DNA of 63,611 bases, the filler included, from Hyphochytrium catenoides (taxonomy: Eukaryota > Protista > Hyphochytriomycota): the NCBI GenBank assembly GCA_900088475.1. It is 6 parts of 6 records of this genome, joined end to end, with 100 filler letters (N's around TTAATTAATTAA, not from the genome) between each part and the next. Parts side by side here need not be neighbours in the genome. Positions count along the whole stretch, not along the records: positions 1 to 28,290 come from FLMG01002666.1; 5 more parts are not named here. One strand, written 5' to 3'. A model generated the notes under the pieces. That model saw nothing but the letters and a program-made list of their open reading frames with translations. It was not told where the DNA came from and ran no database searches. Both the position numbers and the translations under genes were made by a program. Of the stretch, positions 6,501 through 26,576 are shown piece after piece (position 1 is the stretch's first letter; the number at the start of each line of letters is the position of its first letter).

Positions 6501-9500
6501 AGACGAGATCCAAGATTCCGCTCTCTCCTTTATGAAGGAAGTAGGAACGACATTGCACCCTCTACAGCTCCTTCCAGTGATATCCAGCCAACTCTCTTTA
6601 ACTTTCTCGGTGTCCTTTCTGAGAGAAAGTCAAGAAGAAGGCTGCCTCCTTCGCCCGCTTGCAGAGAGTGATATTGAAGACTGGCAGTGTCAAAGACTGG
6701 GGAGGACCTCAGATGTGTGTGGAGATACCAAACACCGCTGGATGATCGCGGAACTGAAGAAGTCAATCCAAGTAAAGACTTCGCCTCGTGAAGAGTAAGC
6801 TGTGACTTTCTGCTTTCGTGCATCTGTTACCCTTTTTGATCCCTCTCTATCTGTATATCTCTATCTGGAGCGTGTGACACAGGGTGGTGTTGGCCCTTCG
6901 ATCTCTTGGCTTGTGCACCTATCCTGTTTGTTCGTCACCGCCGTTTCCTATGTGTGCGCTTTTCCTTCCTTAGATCTTATACACCTCCTTCCGTGGTGTG
7001 GCACCCTCAACGTGGTTGAAAGTGTACCGGGCTATTCTACTGACGTGGACCCCTCCACACTTTTCCTTGTTCCGTCTCGCATACTCTCAATGTCAGAGCA
7101 TTGAAGCGCTACGATCAATTGAGCTCCCTTATATTTGATCCTGTCCGCCGATCAAGAGAAAAGGTAGAGACAGCTGTATCATTGGCCAAAGAATGGCTGG
7201 AAATAGCCACAGCTCAAGCCATGTAAGTCTAAAGGGACGGAGCCGTCACAGAGCTGCGAATGGTAGGGAAGCCCACGTGTACGAAGGTGAATCAGAATGA
7301 GAGAGTACACCTAAAGGGAGATGGAAGAAGTTAGGCCACTCCAGAAGAGCCGGATTACTTGTCCAGGACCGGATGTTGGAGTAAATGTCAGGCGACAATC
7401 CTGCTTTAACTTTTGACTACCCTGTTTCTCAGGGGACAGAACTATCAAGACTGCCTTCTGTCAGCCCACAGAGCCTCCAGAGAGCTTAAAGGTAAAATGG
7501 CGTGCGAAGTTAGAAGCGAAATAAAGAGAGGCACATAAGAGTGGAAAAGTATTGTGGGGGGGATCATTAAAAGCAGACCAAAGACACCGAGAGGGCATCA
7601 GAGTGCCATCCGATCGCTAAACGCGGCACTTAAAGAAGTATCAATTTGTTTAGCAGGCTCAGGAGAGTTAGAGACCTTCGTGCCAGCAGAGATCGTGCTG
7701 AGCTGTCTCATCTTATGCGCTCTCTCTATGGAAGAACTTCGCTTTGGTCTGGATAGTGTTCAGGTAGGGATCCCAGCGCTCGTTGGCTGCATTTCATTTA
7801 TTTGTGTAGCTTTTGATGGCTCTTCTAATGCTTGTGTGTGCCACCTTTAGACGCTGTACGAAGAGGTACTTCGTCTGGTGCTGGTTCTCGCAAGGTGGGC
7901 GACGTCGTGTCCAAGCTCTGATTCCCCAGCAGCTTCTTGGCCTGTATTTATGCCAGATCACTTCTCTTTCTTTGTGCCCTACCCTTCTCCCTAGGACTCT
8001 ATCTGATTCGTAGCCCTCTTGATGATCACACGTCTCTCAGCTATTATCAGCTACTCTTCCTCTTGTTTTCGCTCCTTTTCACCGGTGGTACTCTTCTTTC
8101 TGATCTAACATATTGGTCTCATGTACTCTTGGGACTGTTCCTGCTGCGCTAGCTACTCCCCTGATGGAGAGTCGCTGGAAATCTTCAGCAGTAGCCTACT
8201 AGGCCCATTAGTCATAAGACGGCTGACTGATCTGAATGAGCGAAGAAGAAGAATAGGATCCGATGCCCGAGAGAGCGGGAGGGATGACCCCTTGATGTAT
8301 GTCAAGGAGGAAGATGAGCTACGTTGGGCGCAAAGAAATCGTTGGCTCCGCCACATCCTTCGCACGAAGTTCTCCCCTGCCCCTCTGGCTGTCGTAGATG
8401 AGCAAATAGTTAACGGAGAGGGCATGCCTGAGAGTTATCTCCTTCTTTCTCTTCCTCCTGCTGTCCTTTACGGCCTTCTTCGCCCACCGCTTTCAGGATT
8501 GACACTCTCCAGTAAGGCGCTTGACGTAATGGATATATCGGGGGATACTGGGAGTAGCGATGGCAGCGATGACGCATCGAAAGTAGTTCCTTCTCCAAGG
8601 ACGGGAGGACTGGCAGTACCACCTTCCTATGTAAATGGACAGGTTTTTGTGGCTGGACTCTTAGCTGGAAAGGGGTTGGAGAGCCAGCAGGGAGACGAGC
8701 CAATTAGACCAGCTAAACGCGAGGGAGCAGGAGGCAATGAGGAGTGCACGAGCTATTATCGACACTATCGCCCCCTCTCTCTCCCACCAAAAGTTGTGAT
8801 CTGGCAAGTAGCCTGCGGATACCGCCACAGCGCACTTCTCTCCACCCAGGGTGTTCTGCTCACCTTCGGACATGGAGAGTGCGGTAGACTGGGACATGGG
8901 ACGGAGGAGAACCTCTGGCAACCTGAGGTGTTGAGGTTCTTCTTGGAGAAGGAAATCCGAGTAGGGAAAGGTCGCTTCTTGCCCTGATCCGACTTTTAGA
9001 TCTGCACTTAGTATTACTTACCTCTATCTCTGCCTTTATTCTCTACCTCTAGTTGATCATAATCCACAGAAGCCTGATGTCTCTTCCTCAGATCTCCTGG
9101 GTGTCTTGCGGTAGGGAGCACACGATGGCTATCACTTCGGAGGGTAAGGCAAGCGTTTCCATACTTCCTCGCTGACACTGTTTCTCTCAAGTGCTGTCTC
9201 TCTTGGTTGCATGCTCTTTCTTTGATCACTTGGTGCTCAGACAAAGCTCTATGCGTCCTATCTGTGCCTTGATCTCCTTCCTCCTGACCCGATCCTTTCC
9301 GCTTATCCGATCACATCGGCTGGTCACTTCTCCTCTAGTAAGAGATATTATCGGTGTGATGTGTCCTCTTGTCCGGGGAGCTCTTCCTTGTTGATGTTCT
9401 TTGTCTAAACTATATCTAGCTCTCAACTTTGCTTTCTCGGTCGCATTAAGGCAAACTCTACGGCTGGGGCTGGGGTGAAGCTGGTCGTCTGAGCTTGGGT

Positions 9501-11188
9501 GACGCTGCCAAAGTGCTTGTACCGAGAGAGGTAGAGTGAACAAGACTTGACTCTCTCTCTCTCTCTTTCCCTATTATACTACTTGTCCCTCCCTTCATAA
9601 CTTGTGGGATCTCGGAAAGATCGGGCGAATCCTTGAATCCTACCTCGTGGAGATCACGACTCTACCGCTTACACTTGTCCCTTGTTGTCTTACCGATAAG
9701 GTGAATCCCTCCCAGCGAGGAGGCGGTGGGATTGGGGAGCGGTTCATAGCAGTCGCCTGTGGTCGAGAGCACTCGCTACTTCTCACGGCCACAGGTCGAG
9801 TGCTTAGCTGTGGGGCTGGAGATTTGGGCCGATTGGGACTAGGAAGCACGAAAGATTCACTTTACATGGCCAGAGTGAAGGGTCAGCTGCTTTCAGAGAG
9901 AGTAGTCTCTGTTTCTGCTGGGGAGGTCCACTCTGCCGCGCTTTCGGCCAGGGGTGCCATCTTTACCTGGGGATACGGAGGTTCAGGCGCACTTGGTCAT
10001 GGCAATGAGAAGAACCAACTTGAGCCAAAGCAGGTTCTTGGATTGCTAGGGATGACAGGAGGTATAGTGACAAAAGAGGAAAGAGGAAGACAGGAAGATA
10101 CCTTTGTCTCTGTCTCTTGTGGAGGTTTTCACACTATAGCAAGGACGTTGCGAGGCGAGCTCTGGAGCTGGGGCGACAACATGACAGGCCAGCTCGCGAT
10201 GGCCTCCTCGGACGGCTTTAGACAGCTTTCCAAAAGCTTGCAGCCGGTCCACTTGTTAGGACTTAAACGCGAGTTAGGAAGCCCTGTTCTGAGCGTGGGA
10301 TGTGGACATGTCACCACCGCTGTCTGTACGGAGGAGGGACGGGTAAGCCTCCTTCACTTGCTTCCCTGTAGAGACAAAGATTCCTCCTTCCATCACAGTC
10401 CTTTCAGAGATAATTCTTCCCCTGGATAACCCACCTTCGACCGCTTTTTATCTCACATCCGCTTGTCCAGCTGTACACCTGGGGAAATCCTGAGGTGGCT
10501 GATGGCCCTCAGCCATCGCTGGAAGACTTCCTGATTTCCAAACCCCTTCTCTCCAACAAGGCACATTTTAGACAAGTCCGAGCAGGTTTTGCGCAGCTTT
10601 TGGTTGGGGTTCCTTCTTTACTTTGTCGCTGCTCTGCTCTTCCACGCAGTCCCTCTCTCTTGCTTGCACTCCCTGTCTTCATTTCACAGGCGCTTGGGCT
10701 CGCTTTGCGGACCTGCTTATGTTATTGCTTCATTTGATTGCGCTAGGACAGCTTCTATATAATACTTGGACTCGTCTCTACGCCACTCCGTTTTCCGGAT
10801 TTTGGGGGACAGGGAGTGCTTGCTTGGTCTGGCCACGTACTACCTCCTTCTTCTCCTCCACGCAAAGCAGCCCGTCTTCAGATATATCATTACCCTACTT
10901 GCTGACGGGAGCTCCAATTCGCCCTTCTCATCTTTCTTTCTCTCCCTGTCAGGTGGGTACCAAACCGTGGCCTCCACAGCGGTGTATGACAGATGGCAGC
11001 GTTGTGTGGTCGACTGGAGTCAGAGCCTCCCAGAGTTTGGCAGTTTTGATCTAGATGATAGCAGCGAAGATGACGAGGAAGAAGTAGGAGGGAGCACCGT
11101 AGGATCAGCTTTTAGAAGGTTCTCCGGTCAGCGCCGCCCAAGTGGTCCTAAGCAAGGAACTGACAACGAAGAGACTCATTACTTCTAA
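399..11188 (+). CDS. Large multi-exon gene: divergent Clu (clustered-mitochondria)-type domain followed by RCC1 repeats; could be two genes
   Basis: Exon fragments separated by CT-rich GT-AG introns. Clu-central-like motif LSSLMHEAGINLRYL (~5250-5295) and EAELIGRLAK. RCC1 repeats QVACGYRHSALL..GVLLTFGHGECGRLGHG, VACGREHSLLL..G.VLSCGAGDLGRLGLG, VSAGEVHSAAL..GAIFTWGYGGSGALGHG and VSCGGFHTIA..GELWSWGDN (8800-10340). Stop at 11186-11188. Exon boundaries only partly resolved. Confidence 0.7.
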
Positions 11189-11388: not shown

Positions 11389-13543
11389 CTATTTGTTTCT
11401 GTTCCTCCAAAAGGAGTGTGTCCAAAGGTATTGCGAAGGATAGAGAGAGAGGGCTCGCTCTAAGAATAAGGCATACTTGGCTATCACTATCTGGGCGCTG
11501 TCCTCTGAGCCGTCGCCGATCTGCTTACCAGGGACGGGCAAAGTAGGGGCGCAGAATGGTAAGACCGACGTTGCTTCAAAATAGCAACATTGTGTGTCTA
11601 CGGTAGAGGTAGGGCTGCCAACTGTCTAGAAGGAGGAAGAAGGAAAGAAGTCCAAAACAAGTCCTACGGTTGCTCCACACTAACCTTTTGCATGTTAAGT
11701 GTAAACAGGTTGTTGCTTCCAGAAATGTCATTGGATTTGCCACTTGTATCGTCCAGGACAATATATACGCCCCATACCGGGGCTTGTTCTCTTTCTGCTA
11801 GCACTCCAAGGCCCGGAGCAAAGTCTAAACTATGCCCCTTGATTTTGGCACTCAGGCGAGATCGGCTTGGCCGTTGATCCGAAAGGAACGACACAGCGCG
11901 ACCAGGGCCGACGGAGAGAGAAGGAAGGCAACCGCTATCCTGGCAAAAAGACGGTAGACCTTAGACTCAATACCTGATTGCCCTGGCCCCTCACTTCTAC
12001 CATGAGCGTCCACGGGCATCCGTCTCTGCCTCAGAACACCTTCAACGACCGCTGTGGACCCCCTTGTATAATTCCCATTCCTTCCTCTGGTCTAATGGTC
12101 CATCTCTTGTACCTTCTTCATAAGATATCCCTGTCCTTTCAATAAATTCCTCTTTCCATTCCGTTACCTGGACAAAAGCAAATCGTTCGTCTGCTTGTCT
12201 GCATTTTCTGCTATAGGCTTCCAAGAACGGGTTATGCAGCGGCCGATAAATCTACGGACATTAAGCAACGTTGCTGAGAACGGTCTAGCGGTAAGCTAGT
12301 TCAGGCGGGCAGTATTGATAGCAGCGTCTACAGGATGGATGCTGACAAAGTATGAGGTTCCAGATCAACCGATCTATCACATCACAAGAATGAAGATACT
12401 TACCACATCCACGTGACGAAGGGTCTGCTCAGAAGAGAAGAGAGGGAGAAGGAGTTCCCAGGGCCCTAAAAGGTGAATCCCTGAGAAGTTAGCATTTGAA
12501 GGGGTAGCAAACGGCGCGAGAGAAGGGGTGAAGGAGTAACAACGGGAGATAGAGTGCAAGATAACATAAGACAATTTACGGAGGCACAAGAAGGAATTCA
12601 CAAAAGAGAGAAGACAATGACTTGCCAAGATGCATCGATGCCACGATGACCCCGCGTTGAGCGAGATCATGAAGAAACTCTGAAGAGATGTGAACACGGG
12701 TGTATTCCAGTACCCGGGTAGCGGACTGGTGGGACAGGCTGACCGCTAGAAGGCAAAACTGCAGCAGACGAACGAATGGCAGGGCGCCGCATGAGTAACA
12801 GCCAGAAAACACGCAGTAACGCTTGCAACAGGCAGAAAACGCAACCATTTCTCAATCTATAGCCGATAAGCTTAGCGACAAGGATGTCTTAGGCAAGGCA
12901 ACCAGTGAAGATGTGTAAAAGGGCAGAGAGAGGGCTGATAAGGAGCTAGAAAGCAGCATAGAAGGATCAAGACTAAAGAGGCAGAGAAAAGAAGAGTAAC
13001 GAGTAATACATCTTCCGCGTCAACATGACTTTAGAGTGGTGAGCCTCACCGCTGCTAGGTTTTGATAGAAGTCCCCGATGACAGCGTCTCTCTCCGCCTC
13101 AGAGTTCTTTCCTTCACCTCCCATGAACCTTTGGATGTTTTCGCAGACCAGGCCATACCTAGGCGGCCAGACTGCGGGCAGTGTACAGTCATTCATGAAG
13201 AAAGGGAAAGGATGTTGTGGGATTAGGGCCGACGATAACGGACTTAACGATAAGCTCTTGGTAGTGAAGAATATCATGACACGAAGGTTTGGAGAGTTGC
13301 AAGTATGCGCTAACCTTTGTAGATCAATCGCCCGAGCCATCTTCCTACCCTTACCAGCTGAGGCAGAGATACGAAGCCAGTGAACCAGGCGACCTGCCGG
13401 ACAGCCAGATATTCAAGGTACTGTCGAGTTCGTGTAAGGAGCGAGGCGGCGCTCCAGGGTCGTTGGAATGGGCTATCAAAGACAATTGGAGATCCTGGCG
13501 ATCGAGAAGGAGGTGGGGGATCCGCTCGGCAAGTCCTTGCCAT
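11389..13543 (-). CDS. LpxL/HtrB/MsbB-family (Lip_A_acyltrans-type) acyltransferase, 7 exons, about 345 aa
   Basis: Manual splice of 13543-13315, 13171-13050, 12758-12626, 12465-12404, 12251-12168, 11939-11741 and 11597-11389 gives 1038 nt in frame. Motifs occur in the canonical order: YLEYLAVR..VGRWLGRLIY, VCENIQRF..SEAERDAVI..FYQNL, RGVIVASMHLGPWE (HX4E), IYRPLHNP, SFLSDQRP, PGLGVLAE..APV, LERAL..YPSQYLWTH.FW. An acceptor at 13558 allows a further upstream exon, and the last donor is weak. Confidence 0.88.
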
Positions 13544-14482
13544 TGCGCCATTCACGACTAGTGGGCAATCGGACAGCTTATTAGCGTCTGTGCATCGTCT
13601 TTAACGGACCACAGTTGCCGCCCTCGACTCGCTGCATGTGGACCCCCAGCGCATGCCTTGCTTTGCTGTTCTACTTCCTCTGACGTTTACAGGTAGTACC
13701 TCATTATCTGACAGGATTAACCTTGAGTCTCTTTGCCTGGAAAGCGTAGATGGCAGAAGGTCACGCATGCCCAAGAACCATGAAGAATGAGGCCGAGACA
13801 GCGGCCGAGAAGCTTCAATAAAGATTTTCTGTTTCTGATTCTGAAGCTTCAACATCCGCTTGCAATTGGCCTCTCCGACTCTACTCACCCCAGGTGTGCT
13901 GGGCCTACCACTTAGCCTAAGCAGTTGGTAAAAACTGCTCGAGAGGGGCAGGTTTCTCCGATCACATGGTGTGGAGACGTTAGCCCCGATGCTAACTGTA
14001 CAATGCTCTCTATCCTGATTAAGTCGCATTTAAACCTCAGCTAATAGTTCTATAGAGTTATATGCCATCCGCCATAAACACCATATAAACTCCTAGCATT
14101 ACCTGGCAAAAAAATGCTTATGGACCCTTCTAACTTCGCATATCGATGCATCTCGGGCTCCGAGTAGATGTGACGATTTGAGGGAGTGTCCAGATTATTT
14201 GGAGCCTCGATAAAGGCAAACACCTTGAGAATTGAGAACCCTGTCAAAGGGTGGCGATGGTCGCGGTGAGAGGGCGGCAGCAGCACTGCACTGACGATCA
14301 GCGGAGTGAGGAAGTCCAGGAGAGAGGCTAACTATGAAATGCCCGGCAGTCGAGGGTGAGGATCTTGATAGCTCTCGGTGTGAGGGTGCTCTTTGAGAAG
14401 GTTGTTATTGAGTGGAGGCTAATGGTGCTTCACAAGGACTAACAGGGGGTAGAGGGCTTGAGGGGCTATCAGAGAGGTAACG

Positions 14483-17400
14483 ATGAGGACCCTCCTCTTA
14501 TGGCTGGTGTCTCTCTTATCACTTGTCTACGGCGTCACTAAATTCTCTGAGGGCTTCATTTCGCTGAGCTTTACAGACAAAATACTGTCATTTAGTCAAA
14601 GCGCTGCAAGCGCAAAGACGAAGTCGCCAACCTCAAAGCTGTCGGAAGCAAAATTTTATGAGGACGCAGGGCATGACCGAAACCAAAGTGCTGGGTTTGA
14701 TAGAGGGAGTAAAGAAGAGGAGAATGATCTCCCTCCGCCTCTGTATGGAAGGCTGGTGCTCCTCCTGGTTGACGCTTTGCGGGCGGACATGGTCTTTGGA
14801 GACAGTGCGCTCATCCCTCATCAGGTCGGGCCGGCCGGGGGTCATCGTAGAGGACTAGAGCTTCAGCAGTACATGCCCTACACTGTGGGTCTCTTAGAGG
14901 AGAAAAGAGCGTTAGGCTTTGTGGCCACCGCTCAAAATCCGACCGGCAAGTGACATTGCCTCTTCTCCATATCCGCCGATGTTGCTTGGCTTGTCCTTTT
15001 CTCCAATACCTCCTTCATTAGCTGTCCGCTAGCCTTGTGAGATGGCTTCTTCTACAGACGCATCCAGTGCTTTATTTTGAGACCATTCCCTTGCACCTTG
15101 AGCTTCTTTCTTTATGGCCATCCTCCGCCTTGACGTTCTTCACCTTCCTGATCTCCTGGTGGTCTGTGCACTGCAGCCTAACCTCATTGCTTATCCCACG
15201 ATGGCCTCATGCTGCACTATTTTCTCCGTCTTGACCCCGCTTATTTCCATCTCTCTTCCCAGTAACGATGCCTCGTCTGAAGGCACTGACATCCGGGAGG
15301 ATACCCGCCTTTGCGGACATCATCAATAACTTTAACTCGGAGACTTTAGAGGAAGAGAATGTCCTTACGAACCTTGTCAGAAGTATGAAGTCTCCCGTTT
15401 TCCTCTTCTCCGTCAGGTTCCCTTAAAGTGCAAGGTTATTTTCCTAGTCTTCCTTCTTGCCCTAATTGCTTCACGTTTGTCGGGGATGTCACCGTCTATA
15501 CCTACGGTTCATCCTGCTAAGTAACTTCCTGCACTATCGGAGGTCAGTGGACTTGTCTGCCTCTTATTTGCTATGTCGGCATGTTGCGATTAGTCTCTCT
15601 TTCGCTGAGCATTCCTTAATCTCCTTACCTTTTGCAGGCGGTCGCAAGGCAGTACTCTATGGGGATGACACGTGGCTAAAGCTCTTCCCAGATACTTTTT
15701 TGCGAGCTGATGGAACTTCAGGTTTCTTCACACAAGACACGGAGGAAGTCGATCACAATGTGACCAGACACCTGCATCAGGAGCTAGACCCCGAGATGCG
15801 TCATCCCTACAGCAACGATTGGGATGTGCTCGTGCTGCATTATTTAGGGTTGGATCACGTGGGACATCTAAGGGGACCGAGGAGCAAGCTGATGAGCGAG
15901 AAGCTTGGGGAAATGGACGACATAGTGCGGACTATAGCCCAGAACATCGAAGCCCAGGATAAAAAGCGGAAGAGTGACAGAGGGGAGCAGTACCTTCCCA
16001 CATTGTTCCTACTGATTAGTGACCATGGAATGACAGACATGGGAAACCACGGAGGATCAGCGACAGAAGAGGTCAGCGCAGTGCTGGTCTCTATCGGTAG
16101 CAGAAGCGAGCAATGTGGCAAGGAAATCAAAACCACGAAGCAACGGGTGGGAGCGGACCACAGCTTTCCGAATGTCATGCAGATTGACTTGGTTCCCACT
16201 CTTGCCTCGCTCTTCGCTGTCCCTACACCCGGTCTAAGCCTCGGTAGGGTCATTGAGGAACTCATCCCAAGGGAGCAAAAGGGGACTATGTGGCATTGCT
16301 ACACACTCTATCATAATGCTCGCCAGCTTGGACAGCTCTACAAGTCCGCCTCTGCGCAAAGTGCTTCGGGTGAGGACAGGGACGTGTCGGAGGCATACCG
16401 TGCAGCTTTATCCGCTTGGGAACAGCGGCAGGAAGAGTTAGGGATGGAGAAAGCAATAGAGAAGCTCTCCTTGTTTCTGTCGAAAGCTCAGAAGTACATG
16501 ATGGAGCGGCAGATTCCGTTCAACGAAGGCATAATGTTAAATGGGATCTTAGGGCTAGGTGTGGCGTCCGCCGCTGCCTTTCTTTTGCTGTTGCAAGTGC
16601 TAAAGCGGGAGAGAATTGAGTGGAGCGGGGACAGCTTGGTTAGGTCTTCGCCCTTCTCCATCTGTGCTCTCTTGATGTCCTTGGGTTCCATTATGTACTA
16701 CGTTACCCTGGCAGGGACTTCTACAATCGAGAATGAGCACGCCACAGCCTTCCTGCTAGCTACAACTTTTATCTTCTTCTACCTCTGGCACTTGGGAGGG
16801 CGCCCAGCCGGGACGAGAACAGGGAAGAGTCACAGGCAACACGGTAGGGCTTACTTCTATGGAGTCGGTGCACTACTCCTATTCCGGCTGCTGAGAGGAA
16901 GAAATCAGGTCATTAATTTTTCACTGTTGAATGGCGTTCAAGGCTCTGGGGACTATTCGACCTCTGTTCTCCACAGCGGTCCTCTCTTTGCTAGTCCCTT
17001 TTCAGCCATGACAGCTATAGGGAGCCTGTCAGTCTACAAAATCATAGAACTGTCTTCATCCAGGAAAGACAGAGGGTATTCGACGATAACTCAGGTTGCT
17101 GTTGGGGCCTCGCTGCTCTGCACATTTCTGAATCTCGTTCTCCTCTGGCTGCGTGATAGCCCCGACAGGACCGCAAAGCTTCCACTGAGCAAAACCTTTC
17201 TTGCAAGAATGGCATTCTGTCTCCAAGGGCTTCTCTTCTTTCTTCCGGCAGCAAAGTTCGATGTCTTCCGTTCAAAGTCTCCCCGCAACTCTTCACTAGC
17301 AGCTTCTAAACGCTCAGAAGCTGCTATCCTCACCTTCACTCTGTGGCAGGTAGCTTACTGGATGTTAGCGTCTCTTTTGCAGAGGTAACTAAGAGGCCGT

Positions 17401-18693
17401 CAACTCTTCTGGACAAATAATCTGTTGACTAAGCAACCATGTTCTTGAACTGCCGACCTACGGCTGGGAAAAAACTTTTCTGATCCTGTGCACCTCTTTC
17501 CAGGCCTGATAACCTGCCGACTTTGGCTCTTCTCTGCTTTCAATCGGTAGCACTGGAGAAGCTCTTCAAATCAGGAGGAGAGCCAACTGTGGGAGTGCCT
17601 TTCTCATTTCTCCTAATTTATCTTGCCTGGGTAGGGCGAAGCTTCTTTTTCTCGCTAGGAAACTCCCACGTTGTGAGCACCATCGATATCAGTGGAGCGT
17701 ATACGGGATTGGATGCTTATGACCAGGCAGGAATCTTGCTTAGGGTTACGCTTCGCCATTTTCGTTCCTCCGAGTCAGTCTCTATCATCAGTTTATGGAT
17801 ACCCTGCACTTGTCAGTATTGAGTCTTGGTTATTCTTCTACCTTGAGCGCTGCAGGCGCTTTTCTTGGCAGAGCGTCTTACATGCTTCTCACCTAGGCTA
17901 TGGTGGGCACTCTCACCTTCTTGATCACGTGCACCGGGCCCCTGATGGCAGACTTCACAGCTGTTGTCCTCCTTCTTTCATCATCTTCATCGCGCGCATG
18001 GTCGGGCTGTGGAGCTGCCGTCCTGTTCAGTCAATGTTCATTAACATTTATCTTCAGGTAAAGAGTGACAAGTCTGAGCGGCTGTACTCCTCGAGCTAGC
18101 CTCTTCCAAATTTTAGACCTTCCGCTGCATTTATCTGTGCCACCCTTCATCTTACTGCCGGTATTTTGGCTTCTACGACTGTCTCCTGCCAATCGGGGCG
18201 TTTCTGCAAAAGGCGATGTTCTCCTAAAGGACCTTGACGTTTTTATGGATCTCCCCCTGGCCTCCTAGCATTTACCTACCCTTGACCTTAGAAGGCCTGT
18301 CACTAATCTACATGCATGCTGCGATTGTGTTGCCAGCTGTGTCGTTTTCCTTATGAGAACTCACCTTTTTGTCTGGAGCGTGTTTGCACCGAAAGTAAGA
18401 TCCCCAAAACCTTGTAATGACCTGTTAACTCATCTGACATCGACTCTCTGTTTGATCTCCGTTTCTCGTCTTCTGTTTCTTCATTTGCTCATTTGTCCAA
18501 CGAACACTTTCATTCTCTCTTATCTTGATCTCCGCAGTTTTGCTACGAGGTCTTCTTTTGCGTCCACACTTTGCTACAGTTATTGCTACTTACTATTGCG
18601 AGGCTTCTGGCTTCCTCCAAGCCATTGACGTGGAACCGACAGCATATGGACGGAAGTTCAGCGGATTCAGATGTATCGGAAAAGACACGATGA
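14483..18693 (+). CDS. PIGG: GPI ethanolamine-phosphate transferase 2 (PIG-G/GPI7), multi-exon
   Basis: N-terminal TM, LLVDALRAD, spliced PT|VTMPRLKALTSG.IPAFAD, YGDDTWLKLFP, EVDHNVTRHL, LHYLGLDHVGH, SDHGMTDMGNHGG, QIDLVPTL, multi-TM C-terminus with GNSH...IDISGAYTGL and MRTHLFVWSVFAPK|FCYE. Stop TGA at 18691-18693. Confidence 0.93.
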
Positions 18694-19907: not shown

Positions 19908-21567
19908 TGTGCGTGGTATGCTGATCGCCTTACGGCAGCGCAAGAGGCAGAGATTGACGGTGGGCGAGAACTATACAACTGCAAAGCGTACAATCTCTTC
20001 CTTTAGACTAGGAGGTCTTCCCGTACTGACCACCAGGCGAACGAGAATTCAAAGCTGATCTAATGATTGTGCTACGATGGTTACTAGGCTTCAGTGCCCT
20101 TACAGCGAGCTGTGCCTTGCGCTCCTTCAAATTTGTCTGCAGACTGAGGCTGTCCCACTGATGCGGCGCTGGTGCCGCTAGCTATTAATAGAGCATTCCC
20201 CATTCCTTTCTCTCCTCTCTGCCTCCCTAGGTATTCTATTTAGGAAAGACCGGCAGGAAGACCGAAGAGAGAAAAATGAGAGAAGAGAGAGAGAGAGAAG
20301 AGACAGAGCTGAAGGAAAGAGCAAGCAGGACAGAACAGAGAGTGAGAGGTTAGTGCACCATGAGGCAGGTGATGGGCGAGGCGGAGAGAGCAGAACAACA
20401 AGGAGACCAACCAAGGAAATCCAAAAGCCCAAGTTTTCCTTTTGGCACCTGTGCTGGATTGATAATCAGTCCTATGATTCCTTAATGATTCCTTGTAACG
20501 ACTTTGCACTAATCAGTAAATTGAACCAATCAGCGATCACCTTTACAGCTCCCTCGGCCAATCAAAGCTGTGCATTCAGTCTTTTTCCAAATCCCAGTCA
20601 TTCACTGACAAGGTCGCGCTGACTGTTGGGTGAAGGCACACGGACCATAGACAAAAAGTGCATGAAGTCCTTCCATGTCACCTTCAGCTGCCTGAATGGC
20701 TCTCGCTATACTTCGCCGCGCTTGGCACTCTGTTACGAAGTAGCAGTGTTCGATCAACAATAACGATGCGGAGAGGCAGCAGTTTATGTATTGAAGTTCA
20801 CATGCCGAGCCGAGCAGTAGTGAACTGAGTGATGGATGACTTCCGGTACGGCAAAGTAGCGTCTACCCGATGGTTCTCGCTGCCGGATCGCCGGCCAAGT
20901 GGGAGATACTGCTTAACAGCTGCTGCTCTTCTATGAAAAAAAAGGAGTACTACGCTTCTCTGTTTAGGGTCCGTTGTATGGATTGTGAACGGTTTTGTTA
21001 AGCTTTCGCGGGTAAAGTTGAACGAATTGCTCTGTTGATATGCTCCGGAGTGTAAGCCCAAGTTCTATCTACTTTCGCCATTCTGCAGATCAACTCTTAC
21101 AGAGAAGAGTTTATGCAATCATTGGTCTCGAAAGTTAGGAGCAGGCCTCCATTCCCAATGATAAAGCTTCATTTGGGCGAACCTCAGCTGTTCAGCTACT
21201 AGTGACACTGATAGTAGTGAAGTCGGTACCATAAAGAACCGAGCTACATCAGTTGGAAGAGCATCCAAATGAAGAGAGACAGAACAGGGAGACAGTATGA
21301 GAAGAAGACAAATCGAGAATTTACAGGCATGACAATTGAAAGAGGAGCGAGAAAGAGAGATAGTAAAGGCAGGAGCGGGCCAAAGAGAGAGGAAAGGAAG
21401 ACCCAAGAGAAACTCTTGTCAAGGAGGCATAACAAGAGAAAGGCTGCCAGGGCAAGGCTTGCCAATGCTGTGGATACAAAGCTAACGAGGGAGACATTGG
21501 CTTTCAGCATGTCAAAAGATGGCGATTTGTTATATTTTGTAACCGTCGTGCCATGAAACCTCTTCTG

Positions 21568-21569
<2 letters not shown>

Positions 21570-21614
<45 letters not shown>

Positions 21615-21765
21615 CTCTCTCTCTGTCTCTGTCTCTCTCTCGCTCGCTCTCGCTCTCCCTCTCTCAATCTCTCTCTCTCCCCCTCTATGTGTCTCTCTCC
21701 GTCCTCTCTCTCTCTCTCTGTGTCTCTCTCCGTCCTCTCTCTCTCTCTTTCTCCTCTCTCTCATC
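21570..21765 (+). repeat. Compound (CT)n microsatellite tract, representative of dozens across the window
   Basis: Long perfect and imperfect CT runs. Similar tracts at 1-160, 478-520, 35735-35790, 36066-36121, 43868-43963, 56346-56397 and 62742-63050. Confidence 0.95.
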
Positions 21766-22488
21766 ACCCTTTCTCCTTTCTTTCTCTTATTCTTACTTGT
21801 TTCCCTTGATATGGCAATCTGTCTACCTTTGCTCTCTCTCTTTCGTTGCTTCTCTTTCGCTTGGACGTGGAAAGCTACATCGTGGATAACTTCCCATAAG
21901 CAACCGCTGGTATCAACGTTTCTTTCGCGTCAGCAGCCGTTCTTTTCTCCTCGCTTCTGCCTTGGATCCTTTTACAGAGCTTCCACATCTCTCCGTTCCA
22001 AGCTCTGTTCACACTCTATCTCTGAGAGCTCTGATCGCTGAGCAACAGATATTTTCCTATCTTTGTTCTTTTTTGCGTTGACTTTCTGCGGCTAGTTCCT
22101 ACCTTCCCCCATGCTCGGGAAGAACGCCTCACCCGCTGTTGGTTTTCTCTGCACTTTCTCGCTCGCTCTCTGTCGCTCTCGCGCTTGCTATCTCTCTCTC
22201 TCTCTCTGCACCTCTCTCCCTCTCTTCCTGTCTCTACATATTTTCTCCCTACTCGTGCCTCTTCCCCTCTCCTCTCTTTCTCGCTATACACGCTCTCTCC
22301 TCTCTCTACTCGCCGCATCCTATCCTATGATAACCATTGTAGGGTGGAGAGTAGGGATAAACTAGCTCCTGACTCTCCTACAAAGTAAAGACGCTGTGAT
22401 TGCTCTATCCTACATTGCCCCTACAGCCACTATCGGCTCACCGCTCAGGTTTCCCCTCCTTTACCATCCACCCTTTTTCTCTCTCTCA

Positions 22489-22524
<36 letters not shown>

Positions 22525-23051
22525 TTCTTCCATCTCCATATTCCATCAGGAGGTTCACGCTTTTCTGGCTTTCCTTATCGCTCTCCTTCGTGCGCGGGCT
22601 CTTATTCTCAACATATCGGCCTCTGCTGTACGATACTAGCAGCTCACCTCTTAGAGCGCACCGACTGTACGGTCTCAGATTGAATGGAATAAAGCGGAGA
22701 AGGAAGGAGGCTTGAGCAGCTCCCTCTGTTTTCTCTTCCTTCCTGGGCTCTCCTTGTCTATCCTCATTGGAAGTGCCAAGCTGACTCCCCGTTGCATTCT
22801 GAGAGCTCTCAGTTGTTGCTTCGATCTCAGTCTGCGGAGTCCTCTATCCCTGGGAAGCCTTCGTTTTCCTCCTCAAAGATCGTGACAACTGACATATTTT
22901 GGAAGTAGCTAACCTCCAGTCCTCCTCTTCCCGTCTCTTTTACTAGCCTTAGCTCTTCTTCATCGACCTACCATTTCTTCTGCGTTGCTAGTGGTCTCGT
23001 CCTTGGCTGCAGAACACTCTATCGCTCTGCATAGAGAACTAGGCCGCGCCG

Positions 23052-26000
23052 ATGCGAAGAAAGATTAGCTGTTCAACCGCAGGTGGGGTCAAGTCTCATG
23101 AGGCTCTGCGTCTTCAATTGGTGTCCTGCGATACCAATGTCGACCGTCGCTCCCTCGTCAAGAACAAAGCGGTCCCAGTGCCCGATAGCTCCACAGACAA
23201 CGACCGGAGGAGCCAACAACAAGTTGTACAAGGGACGGTGGCTCTGGAAGGGAAGAAAGAGGAAACGGTTCCCATACCCGCACTGATCTCCCTCCTAGCG
23301 AGAAAGAGGCGCCGAGAGGTGGTGCTGGCGTTTCTTCTAGGTTCACTTCTCATCGCTGCCGGAGCTGCAATTGGTCTCGCTTTTTCTTCCTCGCTTTCCC
23401 GCTGGGCCCCTGCCCCAGAGGTATCAGGGCTCTTCCGTGCTCTCTACACCGCCGTAGAGCTGCTAGTCAATGAGATCCACATCTTCGTAAAGCTCGTAGG
23501 AACGTTGATCATGGCCCAACTTCTTAGACTCTCTCTCCAGTCAGCCTCAGGCATGTCGACGCACGTTCTCAATGGAGTAGGAAGTCTGCCCACCCTTTTG
23601 AAGGAGAGAAAGGTGCACAAAGCGCTAGTTCTGGTGATAGTTCTCCTTGGTCCCACGGTTGCCAGCATCGTGGTAGGGAAAGCCATCTTCCTGGTGTGGA
23701 ACCGCACGACGAAGGCGATGTATAATCGTCACTCTTGCTTTATTGGGGACTACGCGATGGACTCCAAGGGTCTTTGGAAACCTATTGAATACTGGCAGGA
23801 GCGGCAGACAAACCTTCGAGCACTGACAATATCTCTTGGCGCCGCCTTAAACAACAAATGTACAATATTGGGAGGATCGGTTGAGAGTTTGTCAATGCTT
23901 GGCTCCGCAGGTGGGGGAGCAAATGGTACTGTGGCGACGGGTGTCGATGGGAGCTCCTCTGCCTCTATAGAAACCGCCACTTGGATGATAGATAGCTCAA
24001 GGAAGTGCAAAGTTGGCTCCTCTATTACTGAGATGTGCGTCAATGCAGGGCACACCTTGATAAACAGAACCACATTCAGGGTTCAACCTAACTGTTTAAC
24101 TCTTATGGATGCCGAACTAAGCAGGATGTGCAACGCCGAGAGCTTTCCTGAGTTTGAGAGACAAGAGGTCAAGGCGCCTGTTAATGGCAATTACACAGAC
24201 TTTTCGTCAGCTGCGAAGGAAGCTGAAGCTCGCCAGAATTGCACTAAGATCGTCTTGCAGGATCTGTGCTATCCGAAGGCCGTAGAAGAGTGTTTTGAGT
24301 CCGAGAGCAAGCGAGAGTGGGATCTTACTCTATCGGCGGAAGAGTTCACGACATCGATTCGGTACAGAGAGCTGCCGGACAGAGAGGAACTGGAGATAAA
24401 TTATCTGACATCCGACCAAGGAAGAAACTGCTCTCAGCCTGAAGATGCTTGCCCTCAGAATTCCCGGTGTGGAATTGCACAGAGGGTTGATTTAATGCAG
24501 AACGTGACTGTCTATACAGCGAACATTCGCCTGTCGCAGACGGCTGGCATTCGGGCCTGGGCCCTCCAGCCTGCTCAGCTCTGGCTCCCTGGCGTCGTAG
24601 AGAACTCTATTGGGCTTTTCAGAAGCAAAAACTCTTATCAGTTTGCGTTGGAAGGCAGCCTTGAGGTGGCAGAGTCTGTCGATACCGTGGACCAACTAGA
24701 GGATCGTGATCAGAGGTATGAACGGATTGTCTTCTCCTACCAGAAGCAAGAGGAGACCATGCGAGGAGTAATGAACTGGGTGACCTTTGAGCTGCTGGCA
24801 ACGGAGGAAGTGGAGAAACTTGTCACTGAGCTGGGACAATTAGCTACGCAAAATCTTAGACAGTCTTCAGCCTCCACCAGAGCTGGACTCCGTGATACCT
24901 CTTACTCTCAATGGAACACTTCAGACATGTGGGATTCAGACGAGCAGGTTGGACCTACAATGCGATACTTCAATTTTACGGCTGCCTGTGAGGATACGGC
25001 GCAGTGGGGATCAGATCAGGGTGCGTGTGAGGCTGCCATCAAGGCTGAGCTTTTGAAGGTACAGACCGTATTCACGGGAGACGACTATGAGGACTCCAAT
25101 CTTTGTGGGTGCCAGTTAGCCCTAGAGGATGGTTCTTCTACGCCTCTTTTGGATGAGCTGAGCAAGTATCTTTCTAATGACCTCTCTGAGGCCACGCCAT
25201 TAGAAAGCGTCGGCAGAGGTCTAAGGGGCAAGCTAGTCGACAATCTCTCGAGCTGGAGGGATCGATTAGTGCCTTTTGGCACCCCAACGAACTATCCAGA
25301 CGAGTGTATTCTACCTTCGAGTCCCAGCGTCATAGGCATGCAAAGCTTTGACTATGAACAGATGACTGGAGAAGCTATGTTCACTTGGGATTTGCAGTGT
25401 GTCAGCATCCGTCCCGCTAGAGGACGAGAATTGACTGTGCATGGTGACTTTGACTTTGACTCAGAGGACCACTCCTGCATTCCGGAACTCCGCCCTGACT
25501 GCTCCTGCGAGGTCTCTCGTAGCCTTAACTACAGCTATGCAAAAATTGGTGCGCAAGTGTTGGGATGTACAAGTCAAATGTCAGGTGCCTACGTGGCAGT
25601 GAACTATTCTATGCAAGCCACAGCTCTGTACCAAATGAGCATTGGCTACATGGAGGCACTCAGCCCGGCCTGCGCGGAGGTACCAGTGAAGGAGGGGACG
25701 GCCCGGTGCAGTATAGAACTTCAGCCTTATCAGTCCAGGGATGACAATCAGAGTTTTGTCGTGTTAGGGACAATGAAGACCACTGCGAAAATAGGTGCTC
25801 CAAACTCAGTTTCTAAGGCGCACACTGTCAGCGGGACCAGGGAGGTCAACGGTGAACAGTGGTACCACATCTTTTACCTTGAGAATGACGGCAACTGGAC
25901 GGCGGTGACTGAGCTAGGAGCGGAGGAACTGGATATGAAGGACTTTCACGTCGCAACAGTCCGCTTCCAAGGTGAAACGAGGATGTGGATGAATGCCAAC

Positions 26001-26576
26001 AGGGTTCTAAATATCTGTGCAGCCAATAAGTCGTCAGACGCTAGCCAAATGTGTAGCAGCCTAATCGCCGCTCCATCTAAAGAAGAGTGCAGTCCGCTTA
26101 TCGTGGACTCTCTAGGTTACGTGCAGAGCGACGAGTATATTGACAGCGAGATCGCTGCGAACATCACGAAGTCCCGCCAGGAGCTGTTAGAGATCTCAAA
26201 TATGCTGGATACAGACTGCCCGGAAGCTCCTTGGTTTTGGCCACTGGGCCTTTTTCTCTTCATGGCCGGTGTGTTCTGTGTTGCCACCGCTATAAGCATT
26301 GCCACCGGGGCTGACATGCTGGGAAAGATTGACGTAGCCACGGTGATGAGGCGCATGGAGCCCTCTCTGCTCTCCGGCGGGAGCAATGGCGTGGTCCGTC
26401 CAGTTATACTGGCAGAGAGAGTGAAGCTCCAGGTGTCAAGAGCTCCCACCGCGAAGCAGGTGCCTGGAGATATTGCAGCTGGCGATAGAGAAACCATAGC
26501 CTCCACAGCTGGACAAGACAACGGAGAACTGCCAGGATACTGGGTCTCAAAGGATAAGAAGCTGCTGATCGGATAG
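23052..26576 (+). CDS. Uncharacterised intronless 1174-aa membrane glycoprotein (about 3 N-terminal TM segments, large Cys-rich luminal domain, C-terminal TM)
   Basis: Uninterrupted 3.5-kb ORF of complex sequence. Hydrophobic segments near aa 90-112, 140-160, 190-215 and 1068-1090. Many N-X-S/T sequons and cysteines between them. Confidence 0.85.
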   Translation: MRRKISCSTAGGVKSHEALRLQLVSCDTNVDRRSLVKNKAVPVPDSSTDNDRRSQQQVVQGTVALEGKKEETVPIPALISLLARKRRREVVLAFLLGSLLIAAGAAIGLAFSSSLSRWAPAPEVSGLFRALYTAVELLVNEIHIFVKLVGTLIMAQLLRLSLQSASGMSTHVLNGVGSLPTLLKERKVHKALVLVIVLLGPTVASIVVGKAIFLVWNRTTKAMYNRHSCFIGDYAMDSKGLWKPIEYWQERQTNLRALTISLGAALNNKCTILGGSVESLSMLGSAGGGANGTVATGVDGSSSASIETATWMIDSSRKCKVGSSITEMCVNAGHTLINRTTFRVQPNCLTLMDAELSRMCNAESFPEFERQEVKAPVNGNYTDFSSAAKEAEARQNCTKIVLQDLCYPKAVEECFESESKREWDLTLSAEEFTTSIRYRELPDREELEINYLTSDQGRNCSQPEDACPQNSRCGIAQRVDLMQNVTVYTANIRLSQTAGIRAWALQPAQLWLPGVVENSIGLFRSKNSYQFALEGSLEVAESVDTVDQLEDRDQRYERIVFSYQKQEETMRGVMNWVTFELLATEEVEKLVTELGQLATQNLRQSSASTRAGLRDTSYSQWNTSDMWDSDEQVGPTMRYFNFTAACEDTAQWGSDQGACEAAIKAELLKVQTVFTGDDYEDSNLCGCQLALEDGSSTPLLDELSKYLSNDLSEATPLESVGRGLRGKLVDNLSSWRDRLVPFGTPTNYPDECILPSSPSVIGMQSFDYEQMTGEAMFTWDLQCVSIRPARGRELTVHGDFDFDSEDHSCIPELRPDCSCEVSRSLNYSYAKIGAQVLGCTSQMSGAYVAVNYSMQATALYQMSIGYMEALSPACAEVPVKEGTARCSIELQPYQSRDDNQSFVVLGTMKTTAKIGAPNSVSKAHTVSGTREVNGEQWYHIFYLENDGNWTAVTELGAEELDMKDFHVATVRFQGETRMWMNANRVLNICAANKSSDASQMCSSLIAAPSKEECSPLIVDSLGYVQSDEYIDSEIAANITKSRQELLEISNMLDTDCPEAPWFWPLGLFLFMAGVFCVATAISIATGADMLGKIDVATVMRRMEPSLLSGGSNGVVRPVILAERVKLQVSRAPTAKQVPGDIAAGDRETIASTAGQDNGELPGYWVSKDKKLLIG

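Follow-up and report, generated by a model that had tools for sequence, protein, structure and literature searches.

The DNA analysed here (the window) is a stretch of 63,611 nucleotides (nt) from Hyphochytrium catenoides (assembly GCA_900088475.1), along the whole of which positions are counted. Within its 28-kb part FLMG01002666.1, we found a minus-strand gene whose seven exons (13543-11389) join into a single open frame and whose predicted product belongs to the PF03279 family, which comprises LpxL, LpxM and PatA and represents the LABLAT branch of the lysophospholipid acyltransferase (LPLAT) enzymes. Judged from the spliced sequence, this gene adds a eukaryotic member, new and highly divergent, to a known family, and its product has kept the key catalytic residues. 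It is part of a eukaryotic chromosome and a genuine nuclear spliceosomal gene. To our knowledge, LpxL-family late acyltransferases have been regarded as bacterial. On present evidence, the result is a well-supported gene annotation and not a demonstrated new pathway.

Membership in the LpxL/LpxM/PatA family, which had been proposed from a sequence-only reading of this DNA, was assessed with a profile hidden Markov model (HMM) of 309 positions, built locally from 64 full-length metagenomic open reading frames (ORFs) together with Escherichia coli LpxL, LpxM and LpxP. The metagenomic sample came from 120 loci recovered in metagenome contigs with a degenerate DNA pattern for H-L-G-N-W-E-[LF]; an ORF with this motif is present in 117 of them, and at least 100 of these ORFs match an E. 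coli profile with scores of 20-153 bits. The eight ORFs nearest the spliced protein were all assigned to Pfam PF03279 (153-210 bits, for a cut-off of 22.3). The spliced protein matches the family profile with 121.2 bits, compared to 2.8 bits for the best of 500 shuffled sequences, and it does so in one match (model positions 10-301, residues 38-337) that covers the family model without frame shifts and places the family motifs in the expected order, as the earlier reading had it. Since the profile members had been picked by H-L-G-N-W-E, the corresponding H-L-G-P-W-E-L was masked in the protein, which left 89.9 bits. A profile restricted to the three E. coli enzymes, in which the H-L-G-N-W-E type of motif is absent, gave 27.8 bits versus 5.6 bits for shuffled sequences. 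The individual pieces of the gene tell the same story: among the 143 six-frame ORF pieces between 11000 and 14000, six of the seven that carry an exon give the six best profile matches, and these follow one another in model order (10-47, 49-91, 107-132, 151-170, 192-244 and 255-301). Furthermore, PF03279 clusters account for 59 of the 60 matches returned by a language-model feature search (Atlas) with the last-exon ORF. Note that seeds consisting of E. coli LpxL, or of LpxL, LpxM and LpxP, recovered only Enterobacterales or plasmid lpxM relatives, and that the resulting profiles gave early spliced models 16-18 bits.

The coding sequence amounts to 1017 nt, that is, 338 codons plus a TAG stop codon. 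In the ORF list, the gene appears only as separate stop-to-stop pieces, as noticed previously, and the proposed organization into seven exons and six spliceosomal introns holds, with the stop codon ending at position 11389; the earlier estimate of about 345 residues was slightly too long. The introns measure 143, 291, 160, 152, 228 and 164 nt from the first to the sixth. Five are of the GT-AG type (donors gttagc, gtgagg, gtaagt, gtaacg and gttagt), the third one is GC-AG, and all six end in AG. The donor of intron 3 (g|gcaagt at 12625) interrupts the Gly162 codon behind its first base, which splits the catalytic H-x4-E motif (M-H-L-G|P-W-E) as the sequence-only reading had claimed. We scored with the family model every in-frame pair made of a GT or GC donor and an AG acceptor lying at most 75 nt from each junction. 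The chosen sites are the best-scoring ones for introns 1, 3, 4 and 5 (four of six), and the GC-AG pair of intron 3 reaches 110.8 bits versus 99.7 bits for its best alternative. Two borders are less sure: (i) the acceptor of exon 3, for which 12758 (121.2 bits) was preferred over 12725 (110.8 bits); (ii) the exon 6-exon 7 junction, placed at 11685/11520, where the donor is strong (aag|gttagt), the combination 11744/11573 scoring 6 bits higher with a weak donor. The start of exon 6 was set at 11939 because an ORF piece (11960-11667) matches the D-Q block. An earlier exon choice (12091-11974 plus 11824-11685) left model positions 170-220 unmatched and scored about 90 bits, and was replaced; a long last exon starting at 11625 split the family match and was dropped. 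The proposed start is the first in-frame ATG, at 13543, which has G at both -3 and +4. A second ATG, 8 nt farther upstream and out of frame, has a weaker context (T at -3) and opens a 66-codon ORF (13551-13354, minus strand) that overlaps exon 1.

Two features of the introns can be mentioned here. In intron 5 (12167-11940), a frame of 79 codons free of stops (12091-11855) runs through purine-rich sequence and could be mistaken for an exon; the family profile does not match it. On the sense strand, the pyrimidine fraction is 0.57-0.71 in five of the six introns, and a 76-nt stretch now placed within intron 5 is purine-rich (pyrimidine fraction 0.29).

At columns conserved in at least 75% of the sampled family, the protein keeps Asn88, His160, Gly162, Trp164, Glu165, Arg200, Asp231, Gln232, Gly245, Glu316, Pro323, Gln325 and Trp333. 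The H-x4-E motif (His160-Glu165) aligns with His132 and Glu137 of E. coli LpxL. Asp231, which stands with Gln232 in the third block, lies in a column where 99% of the sampled family have Asp (E. coli Asp200), and Arg200 in one where 93% have Arg (E. coli Arg169). The C-terminal P-x-Q-[WY]-x-W-x-H block is present as well: it reads P-S-Q-Y-L-W-T-H (residues 323-330), as compared to P-E-Q-Y-L-W-I-H in E. coli LpxP. The likeness to E. coli LpxL, LpxP and LpxM includes a full-length profile match, the H-x4-E motif, the conserved Arg, the block-3 Asp, a (here only moderately) hydrophobic segment near the N terminus and a comparable length (306-323 residues versus 338). By contrast, the catalytic motif itself is H-F-L-T-L-E in the E. 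coli enzymes and H-L-G-P-W-E here, nearer the H-L-G-N-W-E of other bacteria, and the H. catenoides protein has 37 extra N-terminal residues and is encoded by a seven-exon nuclear gene. Further departures from conserved columns are found at Ile89, Pro163, Val220, Ser320 and Phe332.

The 37 residues upstream of the family match were described earlier as a Pro/Ser/Arg-rich extension, and their composition bears this out: they comprise eight Pro (four of them in a run), six Ser, four Arg, two Asp and no Glu. The extension has no hydrophobic signal peptide. A Pro-rich extension of this kind offers, as far as can be judged from its composition, no clear argument for any targeting route; it may serve as a presequence or as a linker, or part of it may be an artefact caused by an upstream exon that went unrecognized. 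In the N-terminal region, the best 19-residue Kyte-Doolittle window starts at residue 46 with a mean of 1.13, compared to 1.56 at residue 19 for E. coli LpxL. By analogy, and on the basis of this hydropathy window, the moderately hydrophobic segment 46-64 would correspond to the bacterial N-terminal anchor.

The nearest sampled sequences (L184, L176, L190, L142 and L210) are 25-27% identical to the spliced protein over 190-320 residues; unlike the H. catenoides gene, these bacterial genes are intronless and have H-L-G-N-W-E and F-F-G motifs. Identity to E. coli LpxL is 19.5% over 328 residues. Among NCBIfam models, the nearest bacterial ORFs best match two for lauroyl acyltransferases (NF006270 and TIGR02207), always below the curated cut-offs. 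Relatives of L176, which are metagenome proteins, carry the JGI label KDO2-lipid IVA lauroyltransferase. A separate clade of ORFs best matches the PatA model NF005919. In the maximum-likelihood (ML) tree, the protein joins two bacterial ORFs with long branches, L111 and L155 (support 97/80), and this group adjoins the clade that contains E. coli LpxL, LpxP and LpxM (94/93), outside the PatA-like clade (100/99). The comparison with PatA was thus made through PatA-like ORFs and not with PatA itself. A phylogeny had been suggested as a check of the assignment: it does not favour LpxL over PatA-like enzymes, as a position on the PatA side was not rejected by the approximately unbiased (AU) test (p 0.21). 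The best explanation of these data is that the gene descends from a bacterial PF03279-family gene and has been in the eukaryote long enough to acquire six introns and a host-like base composition. As for L111, the metagenome contig that carries it (L111:372-3704) has its PF03279 gene between a GT2 glycosyltransferase gene and a radical-SAM (UPF0004) gene, an ordinary bacterial locus.

What might such a protein do? We consider it probable that this nuclear gene of bacterial descent encodes a membrane acyltransferase whose acceptor is not Kdo2-lipid IVA but some other lipid or glycolipid of the host. The 338-residue product would be a membrane-associated O-acyltransferase, anchored by residues 46-64, that transfers an acyl chain from acyl-acyl carrier protein (acyl-ACP) or acyl-coenzyme A (acyl-CoA) to a hydroxyl of the lipid or glycolipid. 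If PatA and LpxM are taken as guides, His160 would serve as the base that, with the block-3 Asp231, activates the acceptor hydroxyl, and Glu165 would shape the acyl-donor site with a conserved Arg (either Arg185 of the Y-R-P sequence, by analogy with PatA, or Arg200). Catalysis by mycobacterial PatA, for which structures are available (PMC4792965, PMC8519569), requires His126 and the block-3 Glu200, and the acid of H-x4-D plays a structural role beside Tyr163 and Arg164 (PMC4792965). PatA belongs to the same family, and its histidine and block-3 acid both have counterparts here (His160 and Asp231); the equivalence of Asp231 with PatA Glu200 is suggested by the published description of PatA (PMC4792965) and not by alignment. 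In LpxL, replacing the histidine by Ala lowers activity more than 1000-fold, and acyl-ACP is preferred by LpxL and LpxM, whereas acyl-CoA is used by PatA (PMC9597891).

The sequence does not reveal the acceptor. A host lipid or glycolipid of another kind is nevertheless more likely than a lipid A-like molecule because of the extreme divergence of the protein, the loss of its F-F-G block (see below), the lack of any sign of partner genes of the Raetz pathway in the 28-kb piece, where no gene is an lpx gene, and the neighbouring genes, which resemble those of oomycetes, a group not known to have a plastid. There are precedents for such a change of acceptor. With PatA, the family is known to acylate sugars of phosphatidylinositol (PI)-based glycolipids, beyond lipid A (PMC4792965, PMC9597891). 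In VexE of the Vi-antigen system, the same domain has been recruited to UDP-GlcNAc (PMC9597891). VexE offers an example of a divergent LpxM/PatA-like domain that works on a new acceptor while keeping the histidine and the block-3 acid; as far as its published description allows a comparison, it differs from the H. catenoides protein by a TPR extension and by the absence of the H-x4-D/E acid, which is kept here (PMC9597891). More specifically, a PatA-like action on PI-based glycolipids such as glycosylphosphatidylinositol (GPI) precursors can be imagined by analogy. This version of the proposal has only a slender chance of being right; it would give meaning to the head-to-head pairing of the gene with the GPI gene described below.

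Several observations weigh against the proposal of an active acyltransferase with a host acceptor, or against the gene model on which it builds. First, the phylogenetic signal is poor: the end branch of the protein measures 2.03 for a median of 0.40 and is thus about five times as long, which fits either a new function or relaxed constraint, and when L111 and L155 are removed, the protein shifts to another long branch in a different clade, so that its position is unstable. Second, two blocks are altered. The F-F-G block, at whose first two columns 93% and 87% of the sampled sequences have Phe, reads I-K-G (residues 243-245), as compared to F-F-(A/G) in the E. coli enzymes, and the Pro of the N-L-x-x-x-F-P block is replaced by Gly94; note that E. 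coli LpxL also deviates at F-F-G (L-F-A), so this block is not absolute for the family. Third, the family profile is a surrogate for Pfam's own PF03279 model, and nine single stop-to-stop pieces, which are too short, gave no family match when compared with Pfam. Fourth, searches with parts of the gene returned no relative: a PDB sequence search with the last-exon ORF and exon 6 gave no match, an Atlas search with exon 6 no usable match, and a tblastn search of plasmids with the last-exon ORF nothing; the last-exon ORF found no orthologue among 1.84 billion representative proteins, the only two matches being repetitive and unrelated, and the 410 pattern matches of the last-exon piece in metagenome contigs included no relative. 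Finally, the junctions were deduced from homology and splice signals only, an upstream exon is possible, the 5' end may lie elsewhere, and codon-usage log-odds trained on four long neighbouring ORFs lent weak support to the exons and left their borders undecided. As for the wider distribution of the family, a scan of viral contigs for H-F-G-N-W-E-L gave chance matches only, and we found no report of a eukaryotic LpxL-family gene in the literature searched, the coverage of which was incomplete. Other eukaryotic members may well exist outside the reach of database searches made with the last exon.

The most serious competitor of a host-specific acceptor is a true late acyltransferase that would complete a molecule resembling lipid A in a mitochondrion or a plastid, an option raised by the sequence-only reading that we regard as unlikely. 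The gene would then represent a step for which plants are not known to have either LpxL or LpxM, although H. catenoides belongs to an unrelated lineage. Arabidopsis has bacterial-type lipid A genes in its nucleus (LpxA, LpxC, LpxD, LpxB, LpxK and KdtA, six of nine genes; PMC3087551), and plants keep at least six genes of the pathway, whose lipid A-like product in plants is of unclear structure and purpose (PMC3087551). The membership in the family, the intact key residues and the position beside the E. coli LpxL/LpxP/LpxM clade and outside the PatA-like clade are consistent with this explanation, as is an N-terminal extension with four Arg, two Asp and no Glu. However, the position in the tree is a long-branch effect, given that it changes without two rows of the alignment and that the AU test accommodates the PatA side, and identity to E. 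coli LpxL is low. Moreover, the extension is Pro-rich and does not provide the signal peptide needed for a complex stramenopile plastid, and the nearest relatives of the neighbouring genes are found in oomycetes, which are not known to have a plastid. A fuller version, in which the protein would be the first late acyltransferase of the lipid A type known to work in a eukaryote and would, alongside the other enzymes of a Raetz-like pathway, complete a lipid A-like glycolipid with six acyl chains in an organelle membrane, appears rather improbable. The find is of wider interest in either case: a gene of the LpxL family, intact and long established in the nucleus of a protist, may be the sign of a fuller lipid A-like pathway in eukaryotes or, alternatively, a clear example of a glycolipid acyltransferase of bacterial origin that has taken on a eukaryotic lipid.

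It is also improbable that the gene is the decaying or silent remnant of an ancient gene transfer, with a frame that is still open and a product that is either not expressed or inactive as an enzyme. The very long branch, the lost F-F-G block, the weak codon-usage signal and the lack of relatives in last-exon searches of representative proteins, metagenome contigs and plasmids would suit such a relic. On the other hand, a frame of 338 codons has stayed open over seven exons, consensus-like signals are present at all six introns, the residues needed for catalysis are all kept, and the family model is matched over its whole length without frame shifts.

An ordinary eukaryotic acyltransferase of the acylglycerol-phosphate acyltransferase (AGPAT), lysophosphatidic acid acyltransferase or tafazzin type, resembling the family only through H-x4-D/E, shares with it the LPLAT superfamily fold and this motif, and some PF03279 subfamilies are named 'lysophospholipid acyltransferase' by NCBI. 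We nevertheless consider this explanation very improbable. In a phmmer comparison, E. coli PlsC, an AGPAT, did not match the spliced protein at E values up to 100, and the family profile gave PlsC 6.2 bits versus 121 for the spliced protein (the comparison being with PlsC and not with a tafazzin). Furthermore, about 90 bits are left once H-x4-E is masked, and the match extends over the whole PF03279-type model, including the C-terminal P-x-Q-Y-L-W-x-H that is also found in E. coli LpxL and LpxP. Hence, the protein does not appear to be of the AGPAT type, the outcome against which the earlier reading had proposed to check its assignment.

Although the family is overwhelmingly bacterial and the named or annotated matches are all bacterial or metagenomic, bacterial contamination or a chimeric assembly is scarcely credible, since the coding sequence is interrupted six times and matches the family only once spliced, its GT/GC-AG signals are like those of a neighbouring eukaryotic gene, eukaryotic genes lie 200 nt and 939 nt away in one contiguous piece, GC content is even over that piece, and no bacterial sequence among those compared is more than 27% identical. 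The argument of the sequence-only reading, which had invoked the eukaryotic flanking genes, is thus borne out: these neighbours are eukaryotic and intron-bearing, and one of them shares the GC-AG donor, which excludes contamination.

The genes on either side are the following. Upstream and head-to-head lies a GPI ethanolamine-phosphate transferase 2-like gene, whose closest database relatives are oomycete proteins (34-40% identity) and which has at least five exons in different frames. Its first intron (~14946-15262) is GC-AG with the same g|gcaagt donor, the sole donor that keeps the frame between two homology-supported exons; the next two introns are GT-AG. Altogether, GC-AG is found in about two of the nine introns inspected in the piece, which is unusually many, and repeated use of such introns in this genome matters for gene calling. 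The acyltransferase gene and the GPI gene may share a bidirectional promoter. On the other side, an ORF oriented tail-to-tail ends at 11188, at a distance of 200 nt from the acyltransferase stop codon; this is where an RCC1-repeat gene with at least two long exons ends. The chromosome is probably that of a stramenopile only distantly related to the sequenced oomycetes. At the GPI7 locus of Phytophthora ramorum, no PF03279 gene was found as a neighbour, and none of four neighbouring ORFs looked up in a protein collection is on record there. The coordinates are collected in Table 1.

Table 1. Exons and other features of the acyltransferase gene and of its surroundings (positions along the window; aa, amino acids)
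Feature	Position	Strand	Description
Exon 1	13543-13315	minus	aa 1-77, phase 1 at its end; family model 10-47 (ORF piece)
Exon 1 contents	13543-13433	minus	Pro/Ser/Arg-rich extension, aa 1-37
Exon 1 contents	13408-13352	minus	Hydrophobic segment, aa 46-64
Exon 2	13171-13050	minus	aa 77-117; E-N-I block (Asn88); family model 49-91; donor gcg|gtgagg
Exon 3	12758-12626	minus	aa 118-162; ends with S-M-H-L-G; His160 at 12632-12630
Intron 3	12625-12466	minus	GC-AG (gcaagt...ttttag), 160 nt, phase 1, inside Gly162 codon
Exon 4	12465-12404	minus	aa 162-182; starts with (G)-P-W-E-L; Glu165 at 12457-12455
Exon 5	12251-12168	minus	aa 183-210; I-Y-R-P-L-H-N-P and Arg200
Exon 6	11939-11685	minus	aa 211-295; S-D-Q block (Asp231-Gln232, 11879-11874); A-P-G-L-G-V-L-A-E-R; family model 192-244
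Exon 7	11520-11389	minus	aa 296-338 and stop codon TAG (11391-11389); P-S-Q-Y-L-W-T-H at 11439-11416
Head-to-head spacer	13544-14482		939 nt; presumed promoter region of the acyltransferase and GPI genes
GPI ethanolamine-phosphate transferase 2-like gene	14483-18397	plus	ATG at 14483; head-to-head, 939 nt from the acyltransferase gene
RCC1-repeat gene	8121-10429	plus	At least two long exons
1174-aa ORF	23052-26573	plus	Uninterrupted

Farther along the same piece, the uninterrupted ORF of 1174 residues belongs to no Pfam family; the closest Atlas cluster carries the name of an oomycete 'transmembrane protein' (score 0.97), and the product is probably a membrane or surface protein specific to the lineage. 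Finally, CT-rich low-complexity DNA occurs at 21553-22041 (plus strand) and within 1-1000 and 22001-23000, with L-S-L-S repeats in one frame and an AT skew down to -0.45.

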